Positions 22,901 to 28,900 of a stretch of DNA of 64,000 nucleotides are shown piece by piece. Origin of the DNA: Bugula neritina (taxonomy: Eukaryota; Animalia; Bryozoa); NCBI GenBank assembly GCA_964035545.1, contig OZ037772.1:9603150-9667149 (forward strand). Reading direction: 5' to 3'. The position numbers and the translations under genes are program-made. How positions within the stretch are numbered: position 1 is the first letter of the stretch; every line of letters starts with the position of its first letter. Below the pieces are notes generated by a model that had not been told where the DNA came from, made no database searches, and was given only the letters and a program-made list of their open reading frames with translations.

Positions 22901-25900
22901 AAAAAGCTTGAAAAATAGTTGCCCCTACTGGGAATGAAGCCCGAGACCTCTGGCTTGCAAGCAAGTGTGCTAACCATTACACCACGAGGACCACAGGGTT
23001 AACTCATCACTACAGACTATATTTAAAAGTTTACAGGATTATTTCATTAGGCTAAGTTGACTTGTTGTGAAAAGTTGAAAATAGATAATTTTACCGATTT
23101 CTATACCAGTTGAGGTTAAAAATGTAGTATAGTAGGGAGTTTTATTATATATTGTACTACCCTTTTTATTATTCTGTCTAGCAGCTTATGCTGGAGGATA
23201 AAATAGTTGAACAAATTCTATGGAAAGATTTGAGATCTTATTTAGCTGTATCCTTGTCTTCAGATGGGAGGCTGAAAAGCTTCAGTATACTCCTGTCAAC
23301 TGAGGATACTCCTGCGGATCCTTCTCTCTTGTCATCTGATTGGTCAGTTTTGTATGCCCAAGAATCAGTTCAAGATGGTGATTTGAGGAGAAACCTGATA
23401 GCTGTCCAATCAGCTCGCCACTTTGCCATTTTTAGTTCAAGCAATAATGGCTTATCTATGAGAGAAGTTGAAATATTTGGTTTTGCTCCTGTGAATTGTG
23501 AGTTTAGCTGAGTAATGTTGTGATAAAAGCAAAAACTTGTTATTGAGATACTCTATTTGCAGTTTTAGCTAGACACCCCTGCAACTCTTTAAACAATAAG
23601 CCATTATTTTGATAAATTTGGCAATGTCAGTTTATCAGAAAAAGTTTTGAAGACATGTTATATGTTGTTTTCTTACTTAAAAGTGAGCACTCAAAGTCAC
23701 ATTAATTAACATTATTGTCTAGGAAAATACTTTATTACAAGTCTTTTTGTTCAGCATTTTAATTTCAATCTGGCTATTTACATGCAGTAATTGATGATGC
23801 CACCGTTACCAAGAGATTAGAAGTAGGTCCATCGGACGTCTCAATGCTGGCAGATGGTAAAACTACTGGTGATCAGATTTATGTAACTGATGGTTGGATG
23901 AGGGTGAAGCTAGATAAGAAGTATTGTCTCACCAACATACGTGTTCACAATACACCAGCTCTGGGTAATCATGACTCGATGTCTAGAAACATCATAGACA
24001 TTAAAACTTTCTCTGGTTCTATATACAGAAATATATTTAAGGCCAGATTACCAATTTCTAATTAAAACAATCATAAAGCCTAAGCCTAGGGCCACACTGT
24101 GTGTATTTTCGCATACGAAAATTAAAATCACGGGTAGCAAAGGTGTCCACTGTAGCTTCAGTGATGCGTGATAAATAAAGCTTTCATTTTTAAATCGCAC
24201 TCGCTTTCAATAAAACGCAATTTACTGGAATATAGCACTAAATAAAGAGATTGGGCTCACTGAATAGCTACCAGCCAATTAGGTGACGACGACAGAGACG
24301 ATTCGCACAAGTGCAAAGGTTTTCTCAACGCGCACAGTGGACACCTTTGCTACTTGTGATTTCAATTTTCGCATGCGAAAAATACGCACCGTGTGGCCCT
24401 AGGCTAAGTCTTTAAACAGTTTAGACGGAGTATATTCATAAAGATACAATGCTGATTTGTAGAGAATGTTGCATTCAGTGCATCAGTACGATCCAGTTCC
24501 ATAGGATACACAGGAGAAGATCCAGCTATTCTGGTAAACGGAAAGGCTCATTCTGAAGACATGGGAGATTACTACGATGCTGAAAGGTTTTCTACTCTTG
24601 ATACAGAAAACTCTCACTGGGTTGAAATTGAGTTTCCATCTCCAGTCAACATTAGCTACATTAAAATCTACGCAACAAAAGATACTGGTATGTTAATTAG
24701 CCTTACAAATCTGGTGAACCTAGATGATCCAAACTAAGAGAACGTAACAATTTTATATTTACTCTAAAGTTGTGACTGTCAGCTGGTGTTTTAACTATAT
24801 TGTTTATAATTGTTTTTATTAAGATCATTAGCTATATTTCAGTTTTGTCCCACTTGCCAGAGCTTGAGTATTTTACAGACCATTACCAATTTACTGTTAT
24901 TCGAATCTAGATCATTTCATGGATGACTTGAGGATACTGGGTCGTACCTCTAAAGCTTCTGTTACACCAAATGTAAATTCCAATTGGGTAATGTTGCACC
25001 ACAGCACTCAAGAAATAGAGCAACTTGAGTTTACTAAAGTTATCACAGACACCAATTTGTACTACTTCATTGCTGTTTACAGCGACACACACCCTTTTTT
25101 ACTTTCCGAGATAGAAGTTTATGGATATGGTGAGTATTGCTGAATTTTTTAATCTTGATTTATTTGATAGTGTTTTAGATATATAATCTATTTAGCAGTT
25201 TTACAATTTGATTATTTTAATCAGCTTCAATAGCCAGTGAAATGAGTGCACTGTTGTAGATTTGTGCGTCACTTGTTATTAGTAGGAAATGCTACTACGC
25301 CAAGTTCACGATAATACCATAGCTTTATTTAATCACTAAACACGATAAGTAATTCTGTACCACATTATAAAAACACATTACATAATCAAAGTAGAATAAA
25401 CACAACTAGACACTAATACTTTCAAACTCTAAAGGCCTGGCCACACGTGAGAATCACATGAAATCTTCTATTTGACACGAAAAAACATTCGTACGAGAAA
25501 ATTTGAGGGAATTCAAACGAAATCGTCATCATTGGGTGTACACAACGATGACGATAGACGAAAAAATCACAATCGACTATAAGTACCATTTAATTGGTCA
25601 ATATAATTTTAGCAACAGTGATTATTTCATTTCTACTACGTTTCTCTATTTGGCAATTTTCTGCTGCTTGTATCTCGTGCAAGACTTATTTACGGACTAA
25701 TAAAAATGACTTGTTGCCATGTATTTTGTGTAAAATAGCTATTGCAAGCATTTTTCAATTCATATCCACATTGTAATCACAGTGAAGCCTAAACTTTATA
25801 GCTTTGTATTTACATGCATGAGTAAGTTTTAATTTTTTTTTAATTTCATGTGCATTAAAAATGTGTTCAAAAACTTTACCAATAAACAAAACTAAAAAAA

Positions 25901-28900
25901 TGTACACATAAAATAGAAAAAAAAAATAAAAATGACAAATCTTTTCCTTTATAACTTATATAAACTTGCGGTACCAATTTCGGCATAATGACTTTTCGTA
26001 TGAGTATGTGGCTGGTCAATACGAAAAGATAACTCACAAAAATTGTCACACCAGTTTCGTGTGTTTCTCACGATTGTGTGCCAGCTATTCAAACATGCTA
26101 GCTGCTGGCTCAAGTTGTTAGGCTCCGCCTCCTCGTCAACTGCTAATAGTCCATCCCAATGCATTACCAGCGTATACGACACCGGCTTCACTGATTGGCT
26201 ATCACGGCTAGCACCATCACGATAATTGATTTGCAGCAAGCATATGCATCGTGCAATAATGCATAGAGAGGGAGACTGAGGAATTGTCCTTTCGATAATA
26301 ATAATACAAAATCTCTACAACGCAATGCATACTTTTTATTTTACTCACTAGTTTCACCATCACTTTAAAAACTTTTTATTTCACAGCTTTACTACTTTAA
26401 TTATAGCTGCAAGCCTAGAATATATTATTAAATAAATTATATCATATTATATATTATTATATTATATTCCTTGTCTTACAATATAGCTGAGCTGCTCTCT
26501 GACAAGCCTACAGAATCATCGGGCAACGATCGTGTTAACTCACCGGATTTAGCGGTAAATGGAAGTTTTTGGGCTGAACCAGTCATAGCGCGTAATTTTT
26601 TTGGCAGTCATTATTGGAGAGTGGACATTGGGGCTCCCTATTACATTCATCAGCTTCGTCTGTTTGTACCAACCAGTGACTGTTAGTATATACTCTACGT
26701 AGTATTTCTATAATTAATAACTTTGAATCATGCATTACAGAAATCATATATTGCAGAAACACAATAAAGGCTAACCTAATATTTGTAAGTTGAAGGACGC
26801 AGGTTTTACATACTAGTTTGTTTGTTTTTACTATCATCAGTAATTATTTATTTAACTGGCAGTTGCCTAATTCTTAGAAATTTGGTTGAAAACTAATTTT
26901 TCTTAAGTTTCACGACAAAATAGTAAAGAACTTACTAAATAAACTCAAAATTCCTGCTTATTGCATCATTGAAACATGGAGGGGGGAAGGGGGAACATGT
27001 TTGTGTTTGTTTATAGTATAAGCCATAAAGTAAAATTAAAGTAAAATTGGTTTGTAGATTAAATATGAAGTGATACTCTAGCGGAAAGTTTGACTTGTGC
27101 CCTAAACTAAAATTACTCAAAAACCTGAAAAATTCAGGCCAATGGCCACCATGCCTCAGCATAATATAGTAGCTTGTATACACTTTTTGTCTGTAAAAGA
27201 TATATTATTCATTAGTTTATCTGTGGCAGATGAGGATATGAAGTCTATTAATATTCTTTGTTCATTGGAGCTAAACAATCGTGCCCCAAGCACTCGCTCA
27301 AAGTACTGGAAACTATGCGACTATATTGAAGAGTTGTCTTCTACTCTATATGAAAAGTTTCCCGAAAATGGCCAATCATACTGGGCCAAAGCAAGATATA
27401 TCGCTCTCCAAACAATGGATAAATTTGGCTTAGTTATAGGAACAGTTACAGCATTTGGGTATCGTGAGTAATAATATAGTTATAACGTATGTGAGCGTGT
27501 GTATGTGCGTGTCTGAGTGTGTGTTATAACGTATGTTTCCAACTTGTGGTTTGTGCAACATTGATCTACAAAAGCTATCCTTATACAAAATGCCTGTAGC
27601 TCAGAAACTACCAATTTAAAGTTTCTACATGTATTTTGTAGCTGTGAGAGATGATGAGCGACTAACACTTTTAACAGCTGAAGAAGAGACGCCTTCTCAA
27701 GTTCCTAATACTGATGATGGGCATTGGCAAGCGATTGAAGGCTCAAATTCAGGAGAAATGTTTGGCATGATTGATTTTCAGGTGCATCCGGATGTAAAGG
27801 AAATTGGGTTTATAAGTGATTCAGAAATCAAAGGATCAATCTCTCTTAGAGAGCTTGAAGTTTATGGCTACGTTTGTGGTATGAATTTTGCTTGGATTAG
27901 CTTTTGTAGAAAAATAAAAATATTTTTGCCATACTAAAAAAGATTGAAAGTATATTTCTTACCTAAAACGTATGGCAGACAGAAAAAAAAGTCGAAATTT
28001 CAAGCTTAAAGAGTTTGCAATCAAAGATACTGACCCGTATCACTGTTGATGCTTTTACTAGAAAATGTGGTGAATGGTAAAGAGGCCACACAGAAGTCTG
28101 TAGTAGACAACCCTCACAGCAGTTCAGAAGAGGTGATGGATCTCCTGATTGACCAGCACTATGACTCGGAGAATTTCGCCTGCACTCAGAGTCTACCGAA
28201 TCAGTGGATACGTATATCTTTTGGAAGATTCATTCTGATTAGTGTGGTTGAAATCTATCAGTCACCAGTAACTGGTAAACTTATTCATTCATATAATTTT
28301 GCACTAGTGTTTTATAATTAACTTTAGTATATGCACGTATAATCTTTTGTTTTTTTTTTGTAAACTATTGTATAATAAAAAACTTACAGGGCTTGTTTTC
28401 ATTCTGTGATCAATTTTAAACTGTGATGGAGTTGAGTGGCTCAAGTTTTTATTTTCAAAATTTTATAAATTTAAAAACATGATGTGCTTGAGTGGCCAAA
28501 GCTCTAACTTATGTGATTTATAATACATGAACATTTTTATATATTGATGATTTTCTGTGCCATAGAGTTATAGGCTACTGTGAATGTATTGTTTATTGTA
28601 ATTGGTTACTGCATGATTTATAGTAAATACTACATTTATATGTAGTATAGTTGATAAAACCTCATTCTTTTTGTTTGGTATAAACTAGACATTTTTTGAG
28701 TGTATTACAGAGTCTGATATTCTGAATAAAGCAGTAAACTTGATTTGGCTCGACCTTTATATTTTTCTGGCACCAATATGATAAAGTTCCTACCTAGAGT
28801 CGCTATTTCTTTATGCTTTCCAGGGAAAAGGTCTCTGGAACAGGTTTATGGCCTCTCATCAACAAAGTGGTTTGGAGAGATTGTATCACCGCCATCTTTG

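Follow-up and report, generated by a model that had tools for sequence, protein, structure and literature searches.

Whether two half-domain exons that are separated by four others can form one and the same domain is the question raised by a gene in the genome of the bryozoan Bugula neritina. The gene is located in a stretch of 64,000 nucleotides (GenBank assembly GCA_964035545.1, contig OZ037772.1, positions 9,603,150 to 9,667,149 of the forward strand), which was analyzed at its full length and is termed the window hereafter; positions are those of the window unless a contig is given. The two exons, A1 and B4, encode an N-terminal half and a C-terminal half, respectively, of a beta-barrel that resembles the F-type lectin domain (FTLD), and the initial annotation proposed that a cysteine of A1 and a cysteine of B4 form a disulfide that staples this host domain around two domains inserted in it. 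The most likely reading is that A1 and B4 are the two halves of one barrel, which either would accommodate a pair of complete domains in its loop CDR4 or would be produced by an isoform in which the four inner exons are skipped. The cysteine of A1 at the junction of strands b4 and b5 and that of B4 in the tail after strand b11, both at the bottom end of this barrel, could then form a stabilizing disulfide, if the protein is secreted. A paired A1/B4 barrel with bottom cysteines able to bond is, tentatively, the best explanation of the locus as a whole. Pairing of A1 with B4 is given an even chance, bonding of the cysteines, given this pairing, a somewhat smaller one, and the A1-B4 disulfide as such is rather unlikely.

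The window has a GC (guanine plus cytosine) content of ~33%, and the gene has a eukaryotic structure with AG/GT introns. Its splice sites were picked by the AG/GT consensus and the phase. It consists of 26 short exons, which are spread over 21.5-41.5 kb of the + strand and are of two kinds, the A and B half-domains. The A exons have at their end the motif W-x-x-V-x-L followed by a hydrophobic strand, and the B exons contain an invariant Trp and end with the motif E-x-E-V-Y-G. All 26 half-exons have a length divisible by 3 and are flanked by introns in phase 1-1. Profile hidden Markov models (HMMs) built from the A and B alignments recover exactly 13 A and 13 B halves and no others, in the order A A B A A B A B B A B A B A B A B B A B A A B A B B. 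This order departs from the A-B alternation at six positions, each of which is either AAB or ABB, and at two positions in the gene AAB is directly followed by ABB.

The first of these two positions is occupied by six exons on the + strand, all of which are defined by splice sites, phase and HMM matches. They are A1 (23788..23964; 58 full codons, phase 1-1; leave-one-out score of 15.2 bits), the outer N-terminal half; A2 (24463..24687) and B2 (24911..25129), the N- and C-terminal halves of the first inner domain; A3 (26487..26681) and B3 (27230..27463), those of the second inner domain; and B4 (27642..27878; 78 full codons, phase 1-1; leave-one-out score of 22.6 bits), the outer C-terminal half. 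A2 weakly matches Pfam F5_F8_type_C, A3 also has weak Pfam matches, and B3 is fast-evolving and contains two conserved cysteines. The second A[AB][AB]B unit, defined in the same way, is located at 38422..41442 on the + strand and consists of A11, A12, B12, A13, B13 and B14. The halves of the two units are only 10-25% identical to one another, and a one-to-one match between the units is rejected, because none is found in the pairwise comparison of the halves. B4 is present as a single copy in the genome, and more than 100 additional A and B half-exons are clustered on other contigs, where profile matches locate them at 7.1 and 7.6-8.1 Mb of C3, at 19.95-20.02 Mb of C4, and at 0.46-0.52, 1.23-1.33 and 2.1-2.3 Mb of C5. 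The match lists for these paralogous clusters leave out so many divergent A halves that the exon order cannot be read from them reliably.

The relationship of these halves to FTLDs is shown by a profile of 38 A halves from the window, a sister taxon and the paralogues, which was run against PDB. Its matches are the N-terminal halves of FTLDs of known structure, namely 3cqo (5.5e-17), 3le0 (4.9e-16), 2j1r (1.8e-12) and 1k12 (2.1e-9). The B-half profile gives no match in PDB at E up to 1, and the B-half consensus (R-H-x-A-x-x-S ... G-L ... E-V-x-V-x-G) resembles the last two barrel strands, with the FTLD ending G-R-Y-V ... L-C-E-V-E-V-x-G, as judged by eye only. Single exons do not reach the Pfam cut-offs of F5_F8_type_C and F5_F8_type_C_2, the best scores being 22.1 bits (cut-off 27.8) and 19.0 bits (cut-off 28.2); their matches, all of them sub-threshold, are to F5_F8_type_C, with scores in the range of 14-19 bits against 28.2, and to a NedA-like galactose-binding domain. 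Such scores are expectable, because single exons are half-domains. The gene is composed of 26 half-domain exons of an F-type-lectin-like beta-barrel.

FTLDs are characterized by a fucose-binding motif H-x24-R-x-D-x4-(R/K), a cation motif h2-D-G-x, and the residues Asp64, Pro106 and Arg131 conserved in the fold (PMC5712786). The cation motif is present as A-V-N-G, A-V-D-G or L-A-D-G in most A halves and as M-L-A-D-G-K in A1, and Asp64, Pro106 and Arg131 are all present in Aa/Ba, A3/B3 and A12/B12. The fucose triad is absent from all 13 domains, in which no A half has His at the His52 column, occupied by Gln, Ser, Cys or Asp, or Arg at the Arg79 column, the N-R sequence also being absent. The domains are therefore lectin-like, but probably do not bind fucose. 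Some of the paralogues on C3 retain the canonical fucolectin motifs F-T-H-T and N-R-Q-D.

The cysteine of A1 (TGT codon at 23925..23927 on the + strand) is located five residues past the W-M-R-V-K-L strand, in the context K-K-Y-C-L-T-N, and that of B4 (TGT codon at 27875..27877 on the + strand) is located three residues past the Gly of E-V-Y-G, in the context Y-G-Y-V-C. Alignment of the 13 A halves and of the 13 B halves bears out that A1 is the sole A half with a cysteine past the W-x-x-V-x-L strand and that B4 is the sole B half with a cysteine past the terminal motif, as had been noticed in the initial annotation. Additional cysteines in the raw open frames of Ba ('PVNC'), A3 ('SDC'), A6 ('GSC') and B2 ('GEYC') are rejected, because they lie beyond the donor sites. 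A cysteine at the A1 position is also absent from ~35 more paralogous halves elsewhere in the genome, and one at the B4 position is absent from all paralogous B halves examined; some of the C3 paralogues have a cysteine three residues past a tail without Gly, the position of which relative to the donor sites is unmapped. The cysteine of B4 would be removed from the protein, if a weaker in-phase donor inside its codon (exon end at 27875, GT at 27876-27877) were used. This donor matches the consensus at 3 of 9 positions and the donor used at 5 of 9, and both are conserved in the sister taxon. The separation of about 290 residues that had been given for the two exons is correct as the length of the four inner exons, but the distance from cysteine to cysteine would be 382 residues in a fully spliced product.

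The positions of the two cysteines in the barrel are predicted by mapping them on the known fold. An FTLD consists of one sheet of strands b5, b8 and b11 and another of strands b2, b3, b10, b6 and b7, contains Asp64-Arg131 and Arg41-Glu149 bridges, and has its N- and C-termini side by side at the bottom of the barrel (PMC5712786). The Asp residue of W-W-R-V-D-L corresponds to Asp64, as counted from Arg79 in the profile alignment, and the W-x-x-V-x-L strand is assigned to b3, which pairs with b10 because of the Asp64-Arg131 bridge. The cysteine of A1 maps to the junction of b4 and b5, around position 70 of the eel agglutinin AAA, the protein of structure 1k12, and that of B4 maps to Gly152+3, around position 155, in the C-terminal tail after b11. 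We infer from the strand direction that b5 must be the middle strand that adjoins b11. Both cysteines are therefore predicted to occupy adjoining elements at the barrel bottom, suggesting that a disulfide between them is plausible in its geometry, provided that the two exons build a single domain. The premise from which this disulfide had originally been deduced, that the W-x-x-V-x-L strand and the last strand lie next to each other, has to be corrected, since b3 pairs with b10 and not with b11; the predicted proximity of the two cysteines at the bottom of the barrel survives this correction. The A1 cysteine falls in a variable alignment column (K, L, N, Y, F, P, Q, H), and its position is probably exposed for this reason.

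The orthologous locus of the sister taxon is represented by contigs from a metagenome of the Joint Genome Institute (JGI) and from two Logan assemblies, with a DNA identity of 74-86%. The exon order is kept in it, with A1 followed by A2 and B3 followed by B4. The ratio of non-synonymous to synonymous substitution rates (dN/dS) between the two taxa is 0.06 for A1 and 0.18 for B4, at a synonymous divergence (dS) of 0.45-0.47 for these two exons and of 0.32-0.55 across the compared exons, and these ratios are as low as those of the undisputed halves. The low dN/dS of both outer halves indicates purifying selection on A1 and B4 and identifies them as real coding exons. The dN/dS of B3 is 0.82, as compared with 0.06-0.18 for its neighbors, while its frame is open and both its cysteines are kept; B3 is subject either to diversifying selection or to relaxed constraint. 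All eight cysteines in the compared exons are kept in the sister taxon, including that of A1 (in P0002/L003) and that of B4 (in P0001/L002), although the residue beside the latter is changed from V to L. In another DNA sample from this bryozoan species, three synonymous changes and one non-synonymous change are found among the B4 changes listed, and none of them is located at the cysteine codon. A word search for orthologues yields only the genomic open frames of the sister taxon, with neither a distant orthologue nor a transcript-derived protein; a full search of representative sequences with B4 yields three matches, all of which are spurious and of low complexity, and a metagenome scan with A1 yields none. 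Co-conservation of the two cysteines, which had been suggested as a check of the disulfide, can thus be judged in one close sister taxon, in which both are kept, as is expected anyway at that closeness.

Pairing of A1 with B4 is consistent with the arrangement of the exons. The A1-A2 intron is 498 nt long (~120 nt in the sister taxon, which is without the inserted element described below), and the B3-B4 intron is 178 nt long, so that there is no room for a hidden partner exon in either of them. The intron that separates an A half from its B half maps, by alignment, just past the Arg79 position of AAA, in loop CDR4 at the top face, which bears the sugar-binding residues of true fucolectins. A split in a surface loop together with adjacent domain termini, as mapped by alignment and not from a structure, suits the insertion of other domains. 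Other comparisons of the A and B halves are neutral with respect to this pairing. The similarity matrices of the A and B halves correlate over 10 adjacent pairs (r = 0.43, p = 0.02), but this mirror-tree comparison fails to match A2 or A3 with the partners known for them, and thus cannot assign the partner of A1. Prediction of A1 and B4 as two chains gives ipSAE scores of 0.32, 0.27 and 0.27 against a mark of 0.34, and is counted neither way, alignments of the half-exons being unused in it. A1 and B4 seem matched in a charge covariation of the Lys after D-G with the latter Glu of E-x-E, but this covariation is rejected because it fails in the paralogues, and the association of Asp64 with Arg131 across the 13 pairs is not significant (Fisher estimate ~0.2). 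B4 has Lys at the Arg131 position and retains the equivalent of Pro106.

Several observations weigh against the pairing of A1 with B4 or against the bond between their cysteines. When the exon order is read as a string of brackets, the balance of 13 A to 13 B depends on A0 (21519-21737), which has a leave-one-out score of only 0.2 bits and without which B9 (36332-36538) is an orphan; that of A7 (33260-33442) is likewise only 1.3 bits. A balanced string with two AAB-ABB neighbors arises with P = 0.083 from a random order of AAB, ABB and AB. A1 has Lys at the strictly conserved Asp64 position, with an Asp two residues later. No signal peptide is found upstream of A0. The sole sequencing run that contains the locus is of DNA; it covers the introns and differs by ~1.5%, and no RNA run is found. 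A cysteine pair of the A1/B4 type is present in none of the paralogues (~35 paralogous halves). It is likewise absent from the outer halves of the A[AB][AB]B unit at 38422..41442 and from the putative A0/B9 pair, indicating that the postulated staple is unnecessary for the A[AB][AB]B layout. At a protein identity of 82-93%, retention of both cysteines is expected by chance in about three of four cases, and their presence in the sister taxon is therefore no real test of co-conservation.

The distribution of cysteines in the gene points in the same direction. Fourteen cysteines are present in all 26 exons, and four A halves and six B halves contain them. Two bracket pairs have cysteines on both sides, which does not exceed the 1.85 expected by chance, and the chance that the one A half and the one B half with cysteines of the present type are bracket partners is 1/13. 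A5 (28062-28274) and B5 (28824-29072) make an ordinary adjacent domain and have one conserved cysteine each; the cysteine of A5 maps to the His52 position at the top of the barrel, and that of B5 to the start of b10 at its bottom, so that these two are probably not bonded to each other. The location of the A5 and B5 cysteines at opposite ends of the barrel indicates that a match of one cysteine in each half can be coincidental. The match between A1 and B4 therefore counts for little as evidence of nesting, and it helps only slightly in choosing between a bonded pair and alternative use of the half-exons.

Alternative use of the half-exons accounts for the same exon order without a split domain, and is unlikely though not by far. 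According to this explanation, A1 and A2 are alternative first halves for B2, B3 and B4 are alternative second halves for A3, and other exons may be skipped as well; A1 and B4 are then never in one barrel, their cysteines are unrelated, and the gene produces several isoforms with tandem domains. Every combination of exons would be in frame, because all of them are in phase 1-1 and divisible by 3, and all six departures from alternation, being AAB or ABB, are explained without nesting. There is a precedent in oyster bindin, a lophotrochozoan FTLD array with mid-domain introns, in which the repeat number is set by alternative splicing (PMC5712786). The almost neutral evolution of B3 would also fit a rarely used alternative exon. 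In contrast, A1 and A2, and likewise B3 and B4, are no more similar to each other than random halves. Their scores of 25 and 27, respectively, are among the lowest for pairs in the gene, closer matches to them are found elsewhere in it, and A1 and A2 differ in length (177 vs 225 nt; 234 and 237 nt for B3 and B4), so that these pairs are not recent tandem exon duplicates. Introns of 120-498 nt and 178 nt reveal no mechanism that makes the exons mutually exclusive, their joint inclusion is in frame, and competing RNA structures were not examined. It also counts against alternative use that AAB is directly followed by ABB twice, that both outer exons are strongly constrained, and that two conserved, probably exposed cysteines are left unpaired.

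The halves may also pair, either in a nested protein or by exon skipping, with cysteines that are not bonded to each other, because they are free, too distant, or linked to other chains or other partners. This possibility is unlikely, with a chance of about one in four in our estimation, and it draws on the location of the B4 cysteine, which is two residues more distal than the C-terminal cysteine typical of discoidin domains, on A5/B5 as an example of one cysteine per half that do not match, and on the other putative host domains, which are without cysteines. It is less easily reconciled with the location of both cysteines on adjoining elements toward one end of the barrel, with their conservation in spite of the V to L change next to that of B4, and with the general scarcity of cysteines in this protein. 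It is very improbable that A1 and B4 are unpaired leftovers of partial duplications, which would serve only as linkers or segments with little structure. In favor of this reading, the two exons have modest leave-one-out scores (15 and 23 bits), and A1 lacks the N-L-A...S-S start motif as well as the conserved Asp; their dN/dS values are nevertheless equal to or below those of the undisputed halves, and their core motifs, namely W-x-x-V-x-L, the Trp of the B half and E-x-E-V-Y-G, are retained. Pairing of A1 with B4 in one barrel remains the preferred reading of the locus.

If the two halves pair and the cysteines are bonded, a small beta-barrel tolerates, in its binding loop, an insert twice its own size and is shut by a new disulfide, which would be relevant to domain-insertion engineering and to exon shuffling, in which symmetric phase-1 introns would build non-linear architectures. 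The fullest form of this proposal is a protein nested at two levels within one family, in which two complete barrels interrupt a third one at the loop that formerly bound sugar, and this host barrel is closed at its bottom by a lineage-specific disulfide across 382 residues, with the layout used twice in the gene; it is considered improbable. If the half-exons are used alternatively instead, the gene would join oyster bindin as the second lophotrochozoan case of an F-type lectin array with half-domains that are spliced in combinations.

Upstream of the array, a matrixin (MMP) catalytic domain is encoded on the + strand by two exons, 14492-14740 and 15467-15671 (Pfam Peptidase_M10, 1.1e-11). 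The second of these exons ends with a strong phase-1 donor, ATG|GTGAGA at 15671|15672, and the first lectin-like exon has a phase-1 acceptor at 21519 to which this donor would fit. To judge from the matching phases, the array may form the C-terminal portion of a metalloprotease that is secreted.

Other features of the window are as follows. A foldback element of ~350 bp, which is a miniature inverted-repeat transposable element (MITE) with terminal inverted repeats of ~75 bp, is present in four copies at 24040-24416, 17815-18164, 29794-30141 and 36906-37251. The sister taxon is without the copy that lies in the A1-A2 intron, and the contig depth there is >100,000; one copy begins two bases past the donor of exon A10. 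An exon for a Sep15/SelM redox domain at 8441-8665 (+) (3.6e-16) and an exon for a CDP-alcohol phosphatidyltransferase at 3888-4412 (−) (8.3e-12) belong to unrelated neighboring genes. A further gene is apparent at 51417-59240 (+), with a signal-peptide-like start at ~51.4 kb, a transmembrane-like segment at ~59.0-59.1 kb and no Pfam match.

The array shares features with several known systems. Tandem arrays are typical of the FTLD family (PMC5712786). When compared with AAA (1k12), striped bass FBP32 (3cqo) and the domain of S. mitis lectinolysin (3le0), the A-half profile aligns to residues 5-71, and A-V-D-G, W-W-x-V-D-L and the following strand are shared by the A halves. The loop from D-G to W-W is ~8 residues shorter in the present domains than in FTLDs, the disulfides of AAA (50-146, 82-83 and 108-124) are absent, and, unlike in FTLDs, the exon order implies a domain that is interrupted by other domains. 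Discoidin domains, or the C domains of factors V and VIII (Pfam F5_F8_type_C), belong to the same jelly-roll fold class. In the C2 domains of factors V and VIII, a classic disulfide between the N- and C-terminal regions closes the bottom of the barrel, with a cysteine just past the final strand. The present C-terminal cysteine is located at Gly+3 instead of the classic Gly+1, and its putative partner is located at the b4/b5 junction instead of the N-terminus. Oyster sperm bindin is, like the present gene, a lophotrochozoan gene for tandem FTLDs, each with a mid-domain intron. Its repeat number has been altered by recombination and alternative splicing (PMC5712786), but neither an AAB/ABB order nor a nested order of half-exons is described for it, and the present gene is known from DNA alone. 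Domain insertion, with architectures such as A1-B-A2 and A1-B1-C-B2-A2 (in which the letters denote domains), is found in 20% of multidomain proteins, with nesting of up to six levels and with inserted domains that are usually smaller than their host (PMC13114784). The present gene would resemble these proteins in that a host sequence is interrupted by whole domains, as the exon order suggests. It would differ from them in that host and inserts belong to the same family and in that the insert of ~290 residues, corresponding to two domains, is larger than its host of ~136 residues.

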